A stretch of 64,000 nt of DNA from the NCBI GenBank assembly GCA_907165135.1, contig OU015567.1, positions 558,001 to 622,000 on the forward strand. Reading direction: 5' to 3'. Of this stretch, positions 18,781-45,815 are shown in pieces (the stretch's first letter is position 1; each line of letters opens with the position of its first letter). This stretch comes from Oikopleura dioica (taxonomy: Eukaryota > Animalia > Chordata). A program made the translations under genes and the position numbers. Below the pieces are notes generated by a model. The model saw nothing but the letters and a program-made list of their open reading frames with translations. It had not been told where the DNA came from and did no database searches.

Positions 18781-19882
18781 TTTCCCATAAAAATCACTTC
18801 TTTTGCTTGTTTCGGCCACAAGAATCGCAGTCTCTTGAAGAAAAAAAAGTAAGTCACAGTAAAAGGCAAATCTCTAACAGAACTAAGAGTGATTCATCCT
18901 TCAATCAATTTCTTCATCAAAGAATTGAGGGAAAGACCTTCAAATTTCTGCAAAAATCTAATGAGGGCCGATGTTGGAGGTCTGAATAAAACATGTTAAC
19001 GCGTTAATGGACCCGTTTTTTACCTTGTAGAATAAATATAGTAACAAGAGCAAACTTGGAAAATAACAAAAAGGAGAAAAAGTCGAGAAATCATATTATG
19101 TTCTTTGTTAACAAGAATTTTCCCCGTTTTAAAAACTGTCGCGATCATTAATTCAAGAAGCAAGCTAATTCAATCAACAATTTATCCAAAAACCAGCGTT
19201 TTCATCTAAAATTGAGTGGACGGAAAATGATGTTGGAAGGCACGTCAGAACGACAAAGCTGTAGTTTTTCAAGTGGATTTTGTATTTTTTTTTATTTTTT
19301 ATTGAATTTAAATTTGTTCGAATAATTTTTCAGCCCAGCGATCGAGGCTGATCTCATCAAGTTTTTGCATAAATGATACGATAGATCGTCGGTTCCTAAA
19401 TGTATTTTGATCAAGTGAAGAATAATGTCGGATGCCCTAAAACATCGCTTTTATTGATGAATATATGGTCCAAAACGTCTTTTTGGCCACGTGACCTTAA
19501 TTTAAATTTTTTTTTTATTTCTTTTTACATTTTTGCTAAGGCTACGTGGCCAAAGGGACGTTTTCGACCACAAATGCAGCAATTAGGCGACGTTTTATGG
19601 ACCCCCCGTCAGCTTTTTCCTTCGAAAAATTGAAATTTTTAAAAACGCCATACTTTTGGTTCATAATGCGTCCCCAGGTTAAACTTGCCTCAAAAACTTG
19701 ATACAAGAGGATTTTTGACCAAGAAAAATCAATATTTTTGCCGAAATTAGGGCAAATTCGTCAATTTGCGGCGAAAAGTCCAATTTTTAAATGGGATTTT
19801 GGGGGTGTTAGAGTCGAGATAGACCCCCGAAAAATTAAGCCTCAAAATTATACAGCTCTAAAAATCAGACCATTAGAGCCAC

Positions 19883-20184
19883 GTCTCTTGTATTCAGTCA
19901 GATAAGGGGCCAACCGACCCGAAGGGGAGGCCAGCCCCGTCTCTTTTATTCAGTCAGATAAGGCGATCTGGCTCCAGATTCAGGCTTCTCTTCGGGTCGG
20001 TTTGGCCACTTATCTGACTGATTCAAGAGTCTGGGCTAGCCTTTCCTTTGGGTCGGGTTGGCGCCTTCTCTGACTGGATTCAAGTGACGGGGCTGGCCTC
20101 CTCTTCTGGTCGGCTTGGCCGTAAACCTGACTGAATACAAAAGACGGGGCTTGCCTCCCCTTCGGGTCGGCTTGGCCCCTTATC
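19883..20184. repeat. Head-to-head array of a ~60-bp GC-rich unit
   Basis: Unit ~GACGGGGCTGGCCTCCCCTTCGGGTCGGCTTGGCCCCTTATCTGACTGAATACAAAA. About 1.4 reverse copies, then 3-4 degenerate forward copies. Inversion point near 19970. Confidence 0.85.
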
Positions 20185-34610: not shown

Positions 34611-37600
34611 CTCCCGTTATTATTTTGATTCTAGTCATGCTGCCAAAAAACGGCGGAGGGGGTAGATACGAGGGATTAAGATAAGAATGAAGTTATGATG
34701 AATTTTTATATGAATAATTACCGGTACTACTATTGGAGAAAACTGAACTCAGAAGACCCAGAATTACTGATATCTGCCGCTTATTTAATTATTTTGTTCT
34801 AGAGTCTGGTCTCATCCCTCTATCGCTAATTAAACCCAGTCTATTTTTATTTCTCCAAAATGATCGCCATTCACACGAACGGCAAATCTATTGTCTCACC
34901 AAACATCAGGTGCCATCCCAAAATTGAATGATTAGACTAAGTACCGTAACGTTTACATTTTTCACATTTGTCGCTTAGCAAATCAGGTGGGTGAGGAATT
35001 TATGGGAAAGGTATTAAAATCGCCCTTTTGGGACAACGCCAAGGGCAAGATTTCACACTTGACATTGTGTGAGCACGGCCTTTTTAAATTTGAGCTTTAT
35101 TAAATGCAACAGCGGATGTATATTCTCTCTTATTACTGTCAATACTATTGAATCAATAGTGTCTTTTTTCGAACATGACATGGCCAGAACCCAAACTTTC
35201 TGGCACAAAGCAAGAAAATCAAATGGATTTTGGTCCATCTAATCAGTGATTATGTGTATAGCCTTACTCAAAAATTGGACCACTAGAAGCGTAATGCCAA
35301 GAAACGTGACTTCATAAATTGAAGGACACCTAAGACTGATATTGAATGAAAGTTCTGATAAGCTGTTATGACCAGGTCATTTTATCAGTACTGACTCACA
35401 GACGAGATTCGCACCACTTTTTTCAGCAGTAGGAAACGAAGAGAGGAGTTTTCATTCGAGCCTATGATTCGAGACATCCAATATCTCTAGAATTTGGGGT
35501 AGTGGTTAGGGTTCTGGGGGGCGTGCCCTTTGAGTTAGAGTGAGGGACAGCTCGAATGATTACCCCTACTACCCTAGGCGAAGCTACAGATTGTTGCAAG
35601 CAGTAGTCGATCTCGTCACCAAGATCTCCCCTAAAAACATTTAAATCCCCTAATCTCCAAAAAATCCCCCAAAATAAAAAAATTTGCGCTGGAAACGTGT
35701 CAAAAGAAGCGGGTTGTTGGCGGTTCAGAAGGGCAAGTTTTCTTAATCCCAAAAGTAATTTCTGTCTTTCCGTAAACAGCTCTATTTGTGGAGATTACAA
35801 CGAGCGGCGATAATTTTTGCGATTAGCAAAAATTTTGAGCAAACGAGCCCTGGATTTATTTGATTTTTCAGCAGCGAGGTAGGATTAAAAAGAAACGCTT
35901 CGGAAATGATTATTTTTTTTTCTCGCTCTGAACTTCTTCAATAGAAGGCATTTTCTTACAGTAAGGAGTCATTCTGGCGCTGGTTTTTAGAATTTCGTTT
36001 GTCGAAGAAACGATGGGATTTTTCAAAGAACAATTGAAAATCATCAATTTCCGGAATCAATTGTAACTTCCGAAGCTCCGAAGTGTCCCCACCATTTTCC
36101 CTTATTCTACACATTTTTTCTCCAAAATCGGTACTTTGTCGTTCCCTAAGCAGCTCATTTGCTCGCTCAAGTGTTCCCCAAATAATTCAATTAAACCAAC
36201 AGTTAAGAAAAAATGTTATTCTTCGCTTTATTTGCTCATCTTTCACCTAATGTTTGTAACTCTTCGGCGAAAGAAGATTAGCCCTGAGAAAATTTTGTTC
36301 CTCAGCCTATATTTTCGGGTTAGACTTTTAAAATATTTATTGCGAGCGTCGTCAATCTCATTATCACAGGAGAAAACAGCTGGGCGGAAAATTTTTCGAA
36401 GACGCAATTTTATGCCTGCCAAGTTTGCTGCTTTCCTATGGATCCTGTTCTTTTAGACAGTGACACCCTTATTATTCATCAAAAGTGATGTTACTGTCTG
36501 CGAGACAATATTTTGTCTATCAGACATGATTTCCAAATAAAAGACCTTTCTTTTTAATCCTTCTAAAACTCATGTTTTTTCCATATTTACGAACATGAAA
36601 ACGGGCGTCTGAAAACTCCAAAATTGGAACTACCAAGTTGCCAAAACAGTAAAATATATTTTCTCAATTAATTTCGTGTTTATTGGGCAATAACCGGGCG
36701 CGCTCCAGGAAATCAGTTTTGCGAAAAGCTCGGACGCGAGGAAAATTACGAGCCATAAAAATTATCCAAAAATTTATGGGGCCAAAAGGAAAACTGACAG
36801 GGATGACTGAGAGACGGAATTTCTTTTTAGAAACTCTGAGAATGATGATGGCCACAATCATCATCTCAATTGACAAGTTCTAAGAAACAACCTCGTAAAA
36901 ATAATTTTTTTGAAAATTCGAGTCGAAAAATTCGTATGGCGAAAATTTCGCTCTCTTTTTTTGGCGGGAAAGAGGCGAAATTGTTTGACATTGATTGCGT
37001 TTCGCACTTTGCTTATCTCGGATTCGCACAAAACAGTCCTTCAGCTCGTTGTTTGCCAAGATTTATCCACGTGACAAGTCCTTAATTTACAACACGGCAA
37101 ATCAGCATCTGACTGATTTACTACTCTTTCTCTCTAAGCTCTGGATTACTCCGACTTTCTTTGATGTTTCTATAAACAAAAAGTACAATTAGCGGCTCGA
37201 CCCCCTTAAAATCGAAAATTTTTCTGATCTTGTGCGCGTTTTTCATCCCTTTCTTTCGGAATTCTAGCGACAAGAAGAGCCGTCAGATCTATTGTTACAA
37301 ATGATGCCAAATCACTATCGATTAGTATTGCTGAGTACAGTAGTACCCAACCGAAGAAATTATTCTGTTCCCATTTGTGAGCCATTTGCAGGTCATGCAG
37401 AGAAGCACGGATCCGCCATTTGCCCCCCGAGGCGCGTGTAACCGATAAGCATTATCGATCCGGGCTCAGAGAGACCCGGATAAAGCAGGATCAAATCTGC
37501 CTGCAAATTTTCAGCGGGCGCTTTTCCCCGCGATATTTTTTGATAAGAACAAAATTTTTACAGACTTCTTTCCGCATTTTGTAGTTAGTAGTATCTTGTT

Positions 37601-37884
37601 CCGGGAGCAGAATTGTTTTTCACGCGATAATGAAGGCCTGGATTAGACTTCTTTTCAGCGCTTCTTGGGAAAGTGATCTTAGCCGTCAATTCTGAGATTC
37701 TTCTTTATGGCCAGATCTGAAGCCGGCTTATCGGAAAGGCCTGCTCTTTTCTTTGATGTTTTAGTTTGTTTAAGATCCCTCATATATTTTCTTGATAAGA
37801 CATTGAAAGATATTTTAGATTTTATCAATATATGATATATCAGGGGTCATATACTTATAAGATCTAAAATATCATATATGAGTA

Positions 37885-39406
37885 GGGGGTGAACAGTGAA
37901 AAAATGAGCAAAATTAAAAGTTGAAAAAACTAATTTGAATCGATGTATATGTATAAAACACATCATAAAAAACATTAAATTCAATAATTGTAAATTAAAA
38001 AAACGTTGTTTTCCATCATAAACGCCAATTTTCTCATGTAGATTACAGTTTTTTCAAGATAACTTTTGATCTCAACCTTCCTCAAGCCTAAATCAAAGAT
38101 AATCTTAATCTACAGAAAAAATGCTTTCAGAAACTTATAAAATCACTTTGTGCACTTGTGTGCAAAAAATTCTAGAGCTAATTATTTGTCCAAACTCTGT
38201 GAGTTGGCCCTCTAGGGGTGTTCGAATCCCGGCAATGACACTTTTTTTTCATTCCGATTTTCCTCGAAAAATTGCGTTAGCTTGATCACGTGACTGAGTT
38301 TGAGTCATAATAAGTCCTCCGGAGGACATTTTTACTTGGAATATATTGCTGGACGACTGAGAACTTCCGCTTATTAAATTCAGTCGGCCCCGTCCCTGGC
38401 TTTTAAATTGAAATGGGCTTGACGGCCCTTCGGGCCGTCTCAGCCCCGTCCCTGGCTTTTAAATTGAAATGGGCTTGACGGCCCTTCGGGCCGTCTCAGC
38501 CCCGTCCCTGGCTTTTAAATTGAAATGGGCTTGACGGCCCTTCGGGCCGTCTCAGCCCCGTCCCTGGCTTTTAAATTGAAATGGGCTTGACGGCCCTTCG
38601 GGCCGTCTCAGCCCCGTCCCTGGCTTTTAAATTGAAATGGGCTTGACGGCCCTTCGGGCCGTCTCAGCCCCGTCCCTGGCTTTTAAATTGAAATGGGCTT
38701 GACGGCCCTTCGGGCCGTCTCAGCCCCGTCCCTGGCTTTTAAATTGAAATGGGCTTGACGGCCCTTCGGGCCGTCTCAGCCCCGTCCCTGGCTTTTAAAT
38801 TGAAATGGGCTTGATTACGGCTGGGATTTGAAGAAAAGATAGAGATGATCAGTCTCATTTCTTCCCAAACCCCGCCCACACCCATTTTTCAATAAACTTT
38901 TGTTTGTCCTTCCCGATTTTTAATTATGGTTTTTCAAATATCAATTTTTTATATAGATTTCTCTACATTCTTAATTAAATTCTTCCATCAGATGGGGTCC
39001 TCCGGGTCCTCCGAGGGTCCACGTGATCAAATTATCAGATTTATATATGTTCACGTTTCGGTTAATAACCATGCCGAAGGAGTCCCTGGAAGAGATTATT
39101 CTTCATTAAATTTGCATAAATTCTTCCATCATCTAGGTCCTCCGGGGTCCTCCAAGATGTCACGTGATTAAAATTAAGGAAAAATTTACATGATCAGTGA
39201 TAATCAGCAATCAAAATCATGAATAGAAACCCTAGTTACGTCGAGTTTGGGAAAAATCAGATTTTGACCTCAGCTGACCCCACGTGACCTTTGATGACCT
39301 CAAGTCATGTGTCAAAATGATCAGTGGATCAAGGGCTTTCCATCGATGTGTTATTCATCTCTATTGGAGGATGATAAAAAAATCAATTTTTTCACCGTTC
39401 ACCCCC
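37885..39406. mobile_element. TA-flanked TIR element, 1522 bp, carrying the 56-bp array
   Basis: TIR GGGGGTGAAC(A/G)GTGAAAAAAT. TA on both sides. Inserted in a (T/A/G)-rich low-complexity tract. Confidence 0.8.
38388..38814. repeat. Perfect tandem array, 7.6 x 56 bp, hairpin-forming unit
   Basis: Unit CCCCGTCCCTGGCTTTTAAATTGAAATGGGCTTGACGGCCCTTCGGGCCGTCTCAG starts at 38388 + 56n. I saw no differences between copies. Confidence 0.97.
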
Positions 39407-39888
39407 TATATATGAGTCATATAAATTATATGATATAATATGAGTCATAAGAAATTATATCATATTATATATTATATTATATCATATGATATAATCATAT
39501 ATAATACAATATAGGATATCATATTATATTATATCATATGATATTTTAGATATCTGATTATATATTCCTTTTAATATCTTTTGTATTTTATGTTAGATTC
39601 ATACTGTATAAAAAATATGCTTCTTGAATATTGGAATGGATCCTAGAACAGGGATGGAAATATGACAAAATTTTCCGGCGGCACCGGCACGGCACGGCAC
39701 AACCAAAATACCCGTGCCGCGGCACGGTACGGCACGGCACGGCACGAAATTCGATAATGGGGTGCCGCGGCACCACGGCACTGCACGGCACAAATTTGAA
39801 TCATATGACTTATTTATGAAAATGAAAATAATTAAAGCTGCGAGTGAACTTATAGAATTTTCGAAAGATAATATACTAGGTATAACTA

Positions 39889-40826
39889 GGTAAACTTGAT
39901 GAAAAATGAGCTCTTTTTAGAGCTTATAAATCAGGAATATAATACAGTTTTAGAATCCTCAGAAGCTGGGGATGATTTTGACTATTCATACTTGGGGTTT
40001 TGCTCATGCCCTGAGGGGTTTTGGGCCTTCCAAAGTCCCGAAATGTGGCCAATCTCGGTTAGGGGCTCATAACTTTTCTTCTCCCCATTTCTGGAGAAAG
40101 CCCACCATATGAGCTTGTAGAGGAGGCTCTAACGATTCAGAATATGTATAGAAAACCAACGGACACCCCCCATTCTAGACCCTCTAGAAGGCCCGGAAGT
40201 TGAGGAAGTCACCGGAAAATCAGTACTTTTTACGAAAATAGAGCAAAAGTGCAATATTTTCATCGGAAATCATTAGAAAAACGTTTTAATGACTTTCTGA
40301 CGCACAAAATTTACTCTTGGGTCATTTGAGGTCACGTGGGGTCATATTGTGATAAAAATTGAATCTCGTAACAACTCACCCCGGAAGGTTCCCAGACTAA
40401 ATTTTGTACGTCAGAAAGTCATTAAAAACGTTTTTCTAACGATTTCCGATGAAAATATTGCACTTTTGCTCTATTTTCGTGAAAATAGTACTGATTTTCC
40501 GTTGACTTCCTCAACTTTCGGGCCTTCTAGAGGCTCTATAATGGGGGTGTCCGGTGGTTTTCTATACATATTCTGAATCGTTAGAGCCTCTTCTACAAGC
40601 TCATATGGTGGGCTTCCTCCAGAAATGGGGAGAAGAAAAGTTATGAGCCCCTAACCGAGATTGGCCACATTTCGGGACTTTGGAAGGCCCAAAACCCCTC
40701 AGGGCATGAGCAAAACCCCTAAGTATGAATAGTCAAAATGATCCCCAGCTTCTGAGGATTCTAAAACTGTATTATATTCCCTGATTTATAAGCTTTAAAA
40801 AGAGCTCATTTTTCATCAAGTTTACC
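39889..40826. mobile_element. Foldback element, 938 bp, with ~433-bp arms and a ~70-bp spacer
   Basis: 39889-40321 is the near-perfect reverse complement of 40391-40826. TA on both sides. A diverged arm fragment occurs near 60685-60760. Confidence 0.93.
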
Positions 40827-40951
40827 TATATATAACCGTAATAAACTTATAATCTTGGATAATTTGAATTTTTCAAACAATGGGTGAGGGTGGGGTTGGG
40901 GACATTACGGAGATTGATAGCAATGTTCCCAGCCAATGTCAAGCCCCTTAA

Positions 40952-42318
40952 GGGTACCTAGGTCGAGATGGCCATCTTTGTGGGTAAATTACTACCCTTT
41001 ATTCATAATGTAAAAAGCTCCTTAATAGCTTATTGGATGGATCTATCCTAGATCTCAGATCGTGACAGAGCACTTTTTTGATTTCAAAAGTTTTTCAGAT
41101 AAAACGCCGTCAAAGTTTGCGTCTCGGCCTAAAATAGCCAACTTCAACGCTAAATTCAGGTGAAAATTCTCATACAAACTTTTTTTTTCTTTCTGGATTT
41201 ATATAGTTCCAAGCCTCCTCTTCAATCGTGACAGAGCAGATTTTTGGATTTCGAAGATTTTTTTAATTAAGGGTAGAGTCCCCGTACAGGGTCAGGTCTC
41301 AGAATCGGTTTTTGACCACTTTTTCTGAATCTCCATGAAATTCTGAGCAAAAACCTCCACATGAGTATTTTCTTTATCTCAACCCATTTTCGCACAAATT
41401 GCAATTGAAAATGGCAAAAATTAGTGCATTTTGGCTAGAAGGCGGAAATTTTAAAATTTTTACAATTTTTGGTCGCTATGTTAGGGTGTCATATGATACC
41501 TTTTTGGAAAGCCCACGTTCAGGACATCTTTTTGCGATGAGAACGGCGCCTTTTGGGCTATGCCCGCAAGGCAATTCACGAAGTCAAAGGGACGGAAAAT
41601 GGGTACCTTCGTACTTTAAAATTTTTAACATAGAAAATTTTGACCAATTGAAAAAGCTCGTGTCATTTTTAAGACAAGGGTCCAAACATTACCCTACAAA
41701 AGAATCGAGAGGGTTTTTATTGCTCACTTTGGAGGAGAGTCGCCCTGAATATTGGCTATTTTCGCGATTTTTCGCTGAGACGACAACTTTGAGCGAACCG
41801 CACGTGACTTTTCTCCTGGAATTTCGAAAAAAGCTCGTGTCAATCAGAAGATCTAAGATTAAACTTTCATTTGAGCCATTACACGCCTTCCCAGCATTGA
41901 TAGGTTCGGAGGAGAGTCTCGCTGCTTTGGGCCTGTACGGGGACCCTACCCTTAAATTTTCAAAAGTTTGGACTAGTCATCGCGAATTCCGCGTTTTTGC
42001 TTAGTAAGCTTCCATTTTTCCCGATTTTGAGATGAATTTAATTTTCTGTGGCAATTTTAAGCTTCACCACGATGTTAAGAAGGCCATAAGCTTTCAATTA
42101 AGCCCTTAATTAACAAAATCAGAGATGAAAAATTCTCGTCAAAATTTAAGGTGCTAGCATTTCCTATAGATTTTTAACTTTGAAGTGGTTTTTGAAGGTG
42201 AAAACGTTAAGATAGCTATAGGGTCATTATAGAGTTTTTTGTTCCTCAGAACCTGAAGAATGCGATTTTACGGTCAGAAAATAGTTTAAGGGTGTACCCA
42301 AACTCGACCTAGGTACCC
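40952..42318. mobile_element. TTAA-flanked element (Kolobok-like), 1367 bp including a nested insert
   Basis: TIR GGGTACCTAGGTCGAG. TTAA at 40948-40951 and 42319-42322. Confidence 0.9.
41271..41951. mobile_element. TTAA-flanked MITE, 681 bp, nested in 40952-42318
   Basis: TIR GGGTAG(A/G)GTCCCCGTACAGG. TTAA at 41267-41270 and 41952-41955. The 201-aa ORF at 41399 lies inside it and has no transposase motif. Confidence 0.9.
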
Positions 42319-42322
42319 TTAA

Positions 42323-42699
42323 GAGGGGCTCGTCAATATGGATTTTCGGGGGAGATGAAAATCTCACTTCTACATATAGTGTGCATATGTATAATATATT
42401 TTTAGAATCTACAGATCCTGACGAGTCTGTTGAGCCTGAAATTATTTAATAAAAATAAGTTTTAGGGGGTAAAATCGATGAATTTGTGAAAAAAATGACC
42501 GTTTTTGGTTAATTTTCGCGAAATGGCCCTACTTTTGCGGCATTTTTAACCGATTTTTTCTGACCAATATTTTTTCTCGTTTGCGCCGGTCGAATTTTAC
42601 AACCCTTTTCTTCCCCCTATGAATTTTATTTTTTTCTATCCAATCAGGTTTTCCCGCTTTTTTTGGTCAAGAACAACCCCGATATTGACGACCTCCCCC
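42323..42699. mobile_element. TTAA-flanked MITE, family A, 377 bp
   Basis: TIR ~RRGG(G/A)G(C/G)TCGTCAATAT. TTAA on both sides. Homologous to 3555-3923. Confidence 0.88.
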
Positions 42700-42899
42700 T
42701 TAAATTCAAAAATCAAGGAACGGGGCTGAAACGGCCCAAAGGGCCGTCAAGCCCTTAAATTCAAAAATCAGGGACGGGGCTGAAACGGCCCAAAGGGCCG
42801 TCAAGCCCCTTAAATTCAAAAATCAAGGAACGGGGCTGAAACGGCCAAAAGGGCCGTCAAGCCCCTTAAATTCAAAAATCAAGGAACGGGGCTGAAACA
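42700..42899. repeat. Second array of the 56-bp hairpin family, opposite orientation, about 3.6 copies
   Basis: Unit TTAAATTCAAAAATCAAGGAACGGGGCTGAAACGGCCCAAAGGGCCGTCAAGCCC(C) starts at 42700, 42755, 42810 and 42866. Its reverse complement aligns with the 38388 unit. Confidence 0.92.
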
Positions 42900-45815
42900 G
42901 CCGAAAGTTATGTCCTTTATTTTTACCGATAATGAAAATTTACCTAAAAATAATGTTATACTGTGCCGCGGTGCCGCAACCAGATTTTATTCTATGTGCC
43001 GTGCCGTGCCATGCCGCTGTGCCGTGCCGTGCCGCTCAGATTTCCATCCCTGTCCTAGAAGACCCTCAACTCTTGCCAAAATCCCACTAAGCAGCTCTCA
43101 AAAATAATCATTTTCTTATTATTCGCCCTGAGTGAATATTCTTTTGTCAAGCAAAGTGCCCTCCCATGGCGAGCGAAGATTGAATCTTTTCTCTTTTTTA
43201 TATTGTCTTTTGGGACTTCTTTTCTTTACTGAGGGGACAAAGGGCTTAATTACAATCATAATTACAGTAAGAACGAAATTGAATTTTGGGGCCAAATTTT
43301 TGGAAGGTGAAGTTTTTTTTTCGCGGGGACTTTTTCACGTATTTCCGGTGGCTGCCTTCCGGATGTTGCCAAAATCTTTTCTCAAGTAATTTCGCTGTTT
43401 TGACAACATTTGAAAATGAACAATTTGTGGAACGATTACGGAAAGCTGCGGGGCCGAGCTGTTTGTCGGTACGCAATTTTTTTGCTTTCCATTTCCGACG
43501 AAATCTTTATTTTTTCATCAAAAAGAATCGAGCTCAATTTGGGAAAATCCTTTTCTTAGAGCCATTTTTTGCGGAAATTTATCAGTTAGACACCCTTCTT
43601 TTTCCGAAAATTATGAAGGTGATTCCGACTTCTCAATTTTGATAAAAATAAGGGTGTCACAGCGTAAATTCGCGAAAAAAACACCTTCGAAGATTGGTTA
43701 AACGATGGTAACCCCCTTAAAAATTGATAAAGACCAACGATAAGGATCATAATTATCTCCACCCAAAAATCAGAGCTAATACGCCATAAACCCAAAAACA
43801 CAACCTTCCTCCCTCTTGTGACCCGAATAACGGTCGTAAGAACATGTCACGGGGTGTCACGTGATATTAATGACACAAAAAGTAAAACTCGCTTTTGCTG
43901 TTTTATCAAGATGAGCAGCTGGCGAATTGAGGCTAAATGGACAATCAGGAGCTCGGGACAATTCAGAGGCAATTTTTTGATTATTGAGTGGCGATTATTG
44001 AGGACGCTTTGGACAGGCTTTCTTTCTTTGGAAAATACACTTGAGGATTCACTTGTGAATCTTCTTCTGCTGAATTGTTGATTTGAGTTTTCGAGAAATT
44101 TCGATGATTTTTCGGAACCGACAGAAAAATTTCGACAAATTTTGTGTGAAAATTTTCAACCAATCTGAAGCCTGGATTCGGCAATTCGGCTAATCAGAAG
44201 CGGAGTAGTCGCCCACGCAAAATTTGTCGAAATTTTTTTTGTCGGTTCCTGACGCCACCCCGATTTTTTTTTGAAAAAGATGATCTTCTTGGACTCTTGC
44301 CGGTTTTGTCCTGACGAAATCGGAACCATTAATGCGCGCCCGATCGCCGGTTGTTATGGCGTCCGTTAATTTGTGGAAAATCGGTGTGCGATTACGGGAC
44401 CACCCAGTCGCTCCGAGACTCCGCTCGCAAAATATTTTTCCAACGCCGAGAAAATAATTGTCCTCGCTCTTATATAAATGTTGATCCAAGGCACCATCAC
44501 CCAGACAATCTTGCCCCTTTATGACGCCACTGAGCTGGGAATAAGGAGCATTTCAAGATTGACTAGATTCTTGATGGGATTTTTTCTCGAAAGAAAATAG
44601 TCAAGCTTGAAACGAACCTGAGTCAGGACCTGAAAAAGACCCTGATTCAGGTTTTCTCTTCGATGAGATTAAATTCGGAAACACCCAAGTCGTCGTTCTA
44701 AAAACTCGATTTCCGTTTTAATTTCATCCAATTTACGTCCGTGTTTAGTCGACTTCTTTTTTCTAAAAAAATTTCCAGAAATGCAAAAATAAAATGTTTT
44801 GGGATTACACCATCTACCCGTGTACCTTAGCAAGTTACAACTTTCCGCCACGCAAGTAATTTGACACGAGTGGGGAGATATTAACTTGGAGCCTGTAACA
44901 AGCACCGAAAAAAGCAGAAAGCAGGAGCAGAAGGTAACCACCGAGCTAGCCACGGGGACATCAACAGGGTTACCCGCCACATCACGTTTTTAAATTACCG
45001 AATCGAGAGTTTTTCTTTTACGATAATTACGGAACGCGCAAACAACTTCATTTTTTCAAAGAAAAGATATCATCATAGGCGTTTGGTCAAAAAAGGCTTA
45101 AAATTGGGTTGGCCTTGTTCATCCTCTATCTTCCTGCAGGTGTGAATTTGTTCATCTTGAGGCCAAGAAGCCCCTTTTCTGTCGAAATTTCTAGAAAATT
45201 ATAGAAAATTCTAGAAAACTTTTATTACGCATAAGTGACCCAAGGATGAACAAGGCTCCATATGCAGGAAAATGGATGACGAACAAGGCCACCCAAAATT
45301 TTAAGCCTTTTTGTAACAATTTTTATCGCAATAAAAAATCCTTATTTTAAGTTTTTAATCGTCCGTCAAATCGATCACTTTCTCCGACTTACAAAGATCG
45401 AGGGCCATAAAAACTCAGAAGAACATAAATGTCACGTGAGTCAGTCTACTTTTTCTCAAAAGCCATTCTTTCCTGTCGCCTGTCAGTATTTTCTGCCGCG
45501 TCGGAAGTCGAGCGGGAAATAGTATCGAGAGTGATCATTTTCTGTCAGTCCTTCCTTTTTGTTGGTTTCTGGTAATTGTGGCCTTTGAAAAGCTGTTATG
45601 ACAGCAGCAACGAGAAGTTATGCTCCTCTTTTTAGAAAAAGAAAAAAGGGGTCATCGACCGAAGAATAGAAATATTCAATAGCCTTGACTTTGTTAGTTT
45701 TTCTTTGTTACGAATAGTTTACAAAACGTAATTCTATCTTTGCGAGGCAAATTGACAGGCTTTCCCATGTCAAATAAGGCTCTTTAGTACAGTTTTCTTT
45801 AGACCTTGAATCGGG

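Follow-up and report, generated by a model that had tools for sequence, protein, structure and literature searches.

Satellite arrays inside MITEs (miniature inverted-repeat transposable elements) are known from several animals. The pearl/DTC84 tandem-repeat MITEs of Donax trunculus and oysters, for example, carry core repeats that bear a palindrome, with flanks termed a repeat 'cassette' (PMC3879986). The stretch of DNA analysed here, 64,000 nucleotides of the Oikopleura dioica genome (C5:558001-622000, referred to below as the window), holds two arrays of a 56-bp hairpin-forming unit, each followed by a 3' flank of ~130 bp, the trailer. Array and trailer together are called the cassette below, and the transposons around it are called shells. 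What is new in this case is the breadth, as one cassette is present in at least eight shells across three classes of target-site duplication (TSD). The array and trailer are, with moderate confidence, a passenger cassette inside non-autonomous cut-and-paste transposons, moved by its hosts.

The likeness to DTC84/pearl lies in the non-autonomous carrier, the short central array, the variable copy number and the palindrome in each repeat, this palindrome having been proposed for DTC84 as a hotspot for length change (PMC3879986). DTC84 differs in having one modular shell type, a putative TSD of AA and a linked microsatellite (PMC3879986), whereas the Oikopleura cassette has at least eight shells with differing terminal inverted repeats (TIRs) and TSDs, no microsatellite, and a hairpin with a 13-bp stem. 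In Xenopus, MITEs of the miDNA4/Xstir type, Tc1/mariner-type or other, harbour a satellite monomer that is expanded in tandem and dispersed along with its MITE (PMC9659126). The closest match to these satellite-bearing MITEs is family A, a shell family with TA flanks; the Xenopus satellites are, however, tied to one MITE family, while the Oikopleura cassette crosses families and TSD classes. Drosophila DINE-1/DINE-TR1 is comparable in its central tandem block of variable length, its non-autonomous nature and its subterminal hairpins (PMC9659126). In contrast to DINE-1, which is a Helitron derivative, the Oikopleura shells have TIRs and TSDs and are without Helitron termini or an A|T target. 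hAT elements of the Ac/Ds type undergo internal deletion and capture of filler during gap repair and come to have rearranged interiors. Non-autonomous hAT derivatives with such rearranged interiors would explain transfer of the cassette between hAT shells, although no microhomology or filler signature is shown at the junctions here and one shell family is not hAT-like.

The pattern is broader than usual and is found in one of the smallest animal genomes. It provides a tractable system for the study of satellite spread, of interior exchange among non-autonomous transposons, and of strong hairpins as drivers of array turnover. For annotation, the cassette accounts for some of the repeats in the O. 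dioica assembly OKI2018_I69 that were reported as unclassified, a large fraction (PMC8008620).

The hairpin unit and its trailer

Tandem Repeats Finder locates 7.6 copies of the 56-bp unit, 100% identical, at 38387-38814 on the plus strand (array 1) and 3.8 copies, 94% identical, at 42696-42907 on the opposite strand (array 2). Both the identity of the array 1 copies and the opposite orientation of array 2 had been noted in the original prediction, which was made from the letters of the window. The two cassettes are made up as follows:

38387-38814, plus strand: array 1, 7.6 identical 56-bp hairpin units, from repeat finding and folding
38807-38934, plus strand: trailer 1, comprising a decayed unit start, a palindrome and a C-rich run, and ending in TTATGGTTTT
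40834-40946, minus strand: trailer 2, from the trailer alignment
42700-42925, minus strand: array 2, with 3.8 units and, at its edge, a decayed one that had been described as a 5' lead-in

About half of the 56-bp unit is a strong hairpin or palindrome, with a near-invariant core of 33 nt and a stem of 13 bp. For the array 1 unit folded as single-stranded DNA, the energy lies between -14.8 and -15.5 kcal/mol, with z at about -4.1 to -4.4; such stability is reached by 0 of 200 shuffles. This folding recovers the 8-bp stem extended by GGGCT/AGCCC that had been proposed by eye. The hairpin of the array 2 unit, likewise folded as DNA, is weaker (z -3.0 to -3.7).

Genome-wide searches covered an assembly of 64,281,565 bp in 19 pieces, the longest of 17.09 Mb. 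The unit is a dispersed minisatellite, with at least 385 BLAST matches and arrays of up to ~50 units on all five large contigs. When up to one mismatch is allowed, the 3' flank motif matches the genome 148 times and a reversed control 0 times. Loci were sampled by taking 10 kb around the first 20 exact matches to the trailer motif on C1 and C2, a choice blind to the host, and these loci together with the two window copies make up the trailer alignment. The common 3' flank, previously seen as 20 nt, extends to a trailer of ~130 bp in every shell sampled. It opens with a start resembling a decayed unit and continues with a short palindrome, then a C-rich run, and finally an A/T-rich stretch ending in TTATGGTTTT; the palindrome is of the CTGAG..TGATCA..CTCAG type and is decayed in trailer 1 of the window. 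With one representative per shell, most of columns 1-80 of the trailer alignment have pairwise identities of 0.85-0.93, the columns up to 135 have ~0.5-0.67, and past column 160 the value is at background (~0.35). The C-rich run, at 38864-38883 in trailer 1, is among the best-conserved parts of the trailer. On the opposite strand this run and its equivalents in all trailers give four G-runs, a G-quadruplex-type motif.

No 5' leader common to all shells is present among the sampled cassettes. The 5' edges of the arrays fall inside a unit, mostly in the hairpin loop or in the 3' half. A fixed 5' lead-in, as had been proposed from the two window arrays, was not found: the lead-in of array 2 aligns as a decayed unit (13/18 positions, by eye) and is absent from L036, a sister copy of array 2's host that holds only ~0.7 unit, and the lead-in of array 1 is specific to array 1's shell family. 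The clustering of 5' edges is given weak weight, because at locus L037 the edge is that of a nested MITE and because in several edge units the palindrome has deletions, which can pass for raggedness at the 5' end. On the same two grounds, ragged ends were rejected as proving any mechanism.

Host shells of the cassette

Both window cassettes lie inside non-autonomous elements bounded by 8-bp TSDs, named shells H1 and H2:

37875-37882, no strand: left 8-bp TSD of shell H1 (TATATGAG), the 8 bases being repeated at 39409-39416
37883-39408, plus strand: shell H1, non-autonomous, hAT-like, with termini TAGGGGGTGAAC..., carrying array 1
38283-38372, plus strand: inner left arm, with TGATCACGTGAC, GTCCTCC/GGAGGAC and TGGA-type motifs
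38960-39176, minus strand: two inverted inner-arm copies, at 38960-39036 and 39100-39176
39409-39416, no strand: right 8-bp TSD of shell H1
39641-39648, no strand: left 8-bp TSD of shell H2 (TCCTAGAA)
39649-43052, minus strand: shell H2, a non-autonomous hAT with TIR CAGGGATGGAAAT, carrying array 2 and later nested insertions
43053-43060, no strand: right 8-bp TSD of shell H2

Shell H1 is 1,526 bp long, has TAGGGGG... termini within a perfect 8-bp TSD, and contains no open reading frame (ORF) of 150 aa or more. The original prediction had placed array 1 in a TA element and had seen no TIR; the host is hAT-like instead, and inverted arms flank array 1 and its trailer. A sister copy of H1, L033, has the same ends and the TSD AAGATACC, and the full-length homologues L031 and L033 match over ~530 bp upstream and 600 bp downstream. 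H2 likewise has a sister copy, L036, with its TIR and the TSD ATCAGGGA. The two hosts had been called unrelated. They do belong to different families, but because the array 1 shell is hAT-like with an 8-bp TSD both are hAT-type, and they are less unrelated than claimed.

Genome-wide, each of the 22 cassettes read (22/22) is enclosed in a shell of which one or both transposon termini can be recognised, and the shells are of at least eight kinds: four hAT-like with an 8-bp TSD, one with a 5-bp TSD, one TA-flanked, and two others. In addition to H1 and H2, the hAT-like shells include those at L039 and L040, with perfect 8-bp TSDs (CGTGTGCC and TCTATGGT, respectively). All four combine the 8-bp TSD with short TIR starts of the YARNG type expected of hAT elements, TAGGG.. 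in H1, L039 and L040 and CAGGG.. in H2. The hAT dimerisation domain occurs at 9 genomic sites, which are possible sources of a transposase for these TIRs. Family A, the TA-flanked kind, is represented by seven copies with a 27-bp TIR in unrelated surroundings, holding 9-51 hairpin cores. In family B the termini are ACAGTG..., and inspection of the alignment by eye gives a TSD of 5 bp. Family C, of which the left end only was found, has CAGTGTTGG... termini and G+C-rich 40-bp repeats. The shell at L046 has long TIRs and no evident flanking duplication. Families A, H2 and H1 are all non-coding TIR elements with an array of variable copy number and unique flanks, as is characteristic of satellite-carrying MITEs.

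The H1 family and L046 have inverted arms on both sides of the array and trailer, and these inner arms carry TGATCAYGTGAC, two GGAGGAC and two TGGAAGA motifs, as read from the arm alignment with its L034 row set aside. Family A has left arms only, family B has one right arm, and the H2 family, family C and L039 have none. As the arms are kept differently, the extent of the common segment varies among shells, and the minimal common part is the array plus the trailer. Whole shells have transposed, since near-identical copies stand in unique flanks with TSDs.

This pattern could be accounted for by common descent from one ancestral satellite-bearing hAT-like element, whose interior was kept and homogenised while its termini diverged with different transposases. 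Most shells are indeed hAT-like with YARNG-type termini, four of them with 8-bp TSDs, and subsets of shells have the inner arms in common as well as the cassette. Against this, the TIR of family A is unrelated and its flanks are TA, and the TSD of family B is 5 bp long. Outside the cassette the shells have no BLAST homology to one another, and the boundaries are abrupt, not graded. TIRs, moreover, are functional parts and would be expected to be the last to diverge. Common descent is, for these reasons, considered unlikely.

Two other observations concern the interiors of the window shells. The left side of H1 (38215-38327), which includes the tRNA T-arm-like GTTCGAATCC, is found at ~15 other loci at 71-77% identity, and these are not full H1 copies. 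A tRNA-derived short interspersed element head was considered for the GTTCGAATCC-like stretch and rejected, since no tRNA is called by ARAGORN anywhere in the window. Just inside both ends of H2 (39680-39790 and 42960-43036) the pentamer GGCAC is repeated in inverted blocks, which look like subterminal transposase-binding repeats.

Probable movement of the cassette with its shells

The position of the cassette is constant within each shell family, in every copy read or inferred, and only the number of units differs. Sibling shell copies range from 0.7 to 51 units. Units in the H1 family number 7-29. In the H2 family, another eight sites have left end, trailer and right end in this order, and their spacings leave room for ~0.7 to 36 units. 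Each shell has its own linker variant of the unit. Trailer identity is 0.87-0.97 within most shell families and 0.58-0.83 between families. The constant position and the tracking of shells by variants, in conjunction with the mobility tests below, fit cargo moved by its shell, not a unit that transposes independently.

Independent transposition was the core of the original prediction, in which array and flanks form an autonomous-style unit, either Helitron-like and rolling-circle or RNA-mediated, that inserts into transposons. The discrete cassette in this proposal is upheld, in that array and 3' flank recur as one unit in different transposons. The similarity of the 3' flank, which had been thought at risk of disappearing with more copies, rose as copies were added, and the hosts, which might have turned out to be one lineage, differ in TIRs and TSDs. 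Mobility of its own is the part that is not supported. Helitrons have a 5' TC, a 3' CTRR with a hairpin ~10 nt from the 3' end, and insert at A|T without a TSD. The cassette ends lack these termini and this target: one edge falls within a unit (..GGGCCGTYTCAG), the other is at TTATGGTTTT, and neither CTRR nor an A|T context is present at the edges at 22 loci. The Helitron Rep domain (PF14214, Helitron_like_N) had 0 matches when the 64.3-Mb assembly was searched in six frames, the search's controls being likewise silent. No relevant Rfam family was matched at E up to 1 in 36000-45000, with only four weak chance matches to microRNAs or small RNAs elsewhere in that interval. None of the 22 cassettes read is outside a shell, and the variants follow shell families. 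The sharp 3' boundary common to at least eight shells, the clustering of array 5' edges in the hairpin loop and 3' half, and the conserved hairpin would all suit an autonomous-style unit, although the deletions in edge units offer another source for the ragged edges. Taken together, movement of this kind is very improbable.

Two specific RNA-based candidates were rejected. A hammerhead or retrozyme, considered for GAAAC...GUC around the hairpin, is missing the CUGAUGA core and helix I pairing and has no Rfam match. Retroposition with 5' truncation finds no tail, and flanking direct repeats (e.g. TTTTTAAG in family B) are inconsistent across shells.

As a passenger, the cassette would be carried by shells mobilised in trans by hAT-type and TA-targeting transposases. 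The length of the array would be altered by replication slippage or unequal exchange, with the hairpin assisting, and the cassette would pass between shells at the DNA level, without a transposition mechanism of its own. Such passage may have followed three routes. In route one, an older arm-bearing element would have become nested and then have lost parts by deletion. Route two is template switching in gap repair after excision, which is a known route for hAT elements. Route three is ectopic conversion between arrays. The variable extent of the common segment fits either nesting and deletion or gap-repair template switching. With regard to conversion, the 49 units of a locus on C4 (G000:C4:10075920-10078616; L009-L026) match array 1 at 100% identity, yet identity in the trailer reaches only ~79%, and beyond array and trailer the shell is an unrelated one. 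This combination suggests that array sequence has been exchanged between elements, e.g. by ectopic conversion.

Conservation of the hairpin and the 3' boundary

Several points weigh against the passenger cassette. The cassettes read are 22 of roughly 150-180 in the genome. Among these no shell family with both filled and cleanly empty copies was found, and no capture event in progress was seen. In all shells homology stops within ~20 nt of one point (TTATGGTTTT), a 3' boundary sharper than random capture would give. Finally, 10 shell variants of the unit agree at 96.6% identity in the hairpin half as compared with 78% in the linker half, and a pure passenger model leaves this conservation unexplained.

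Because the hairpin half is conserved and the 3' boundary is sharp, a functional reading is kept alive at low probability. The 33-nt palindrome would then be a selected, sequence-specific cis-element, bound by a protein or used in a structure-dependent step, that favours its carriers and for this reason has been taken up and retained by many families; this is compatible with the passenger model. Along with the contrast between the hairpin half and the linker, to which the trailers at 58-83% can be added, the conservation of the loop and bulge bases of the hairpin argues for such selection. The stem itself is essentially invariant, the sole recurrent change being C25 to T (G-C to G-T/U), and offers no material for covariation analysis. 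Counted within arrays, substitutions show no deficit in the hairpin half (7 vs 13, p = 0.18), numbers too few to show constraint. Amplification bias alone could produce the pattern if stable hairpins slip more. Selection on the palindrome is accordingly considered unlikely.

Similarly improbable is that the array and trailer are a portable unit with quasi-defined ends, repeatedly acquired by unrelated transposons because the 33-nt palindrome helps them. If that were true, the palindrome might recruit a transposase or host factor, or might seed repair-template switching, and the cassette would be a hitch-hiker on hitch-hikers.

Nested elements, related repeats and genomic distribution

Three later insertions have enlarged shell H2:

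39881-40833, no strand: nested foldback element, exactly at the end of trailer 2, from comparison with L036
40952-42318, no strand: nested TTAA-flanked TIR element E1, from direct reading
42323-42699, no strand: E2, a second nested TIR element flanked by TTAA, sharing with E1 the TTAA of one unit, from direct reading

The foldback element, of ~950 bp, is near-perfect, with arms of up to 177 nt at 98% complementarity. E1 contains a further TTAA-flanked element (~41270-41958), and its 201-aa ORF has no Pfam match. The short segment at 40927-40951, earlier described as a split-off end, is on direct reading the true end of array 2, and it stands apart from the rest of the array because the two TTAA-flanked TIR elements landed in the TTAA of one unit. 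The TTAA of the unit seems to be a favoured target of TTAA-specific transposons.

A degenerate 57-bp array elsewhere in the window (19880-20184; 3.4 copies, 74% identity) has an inverted partner just upstream. It has only the short cores AGCCCCGTC and CTTCGGG in common with the 56-mer, and the one copy folded gave no stable hairpin. In metagenome scans the hairpin core had 0 matches, and the trailer motif matched 6 unrelated G+C-rich contigs.

The exact trailer-motif matches are unevenly distributed over the assembly. Contig C3, of 2.92 Mb, has 31 of the 70, or ~10.6 per Mb, as compared with 0.5-0.7 per Mb on four large contigs, an enrichment of roughly 15-fold. C3 probably corresponds to what the published assembly has as its Y-specific, repeat-rich region, and its enrichment bears on the build-up of repeats in sex-limited DNA.

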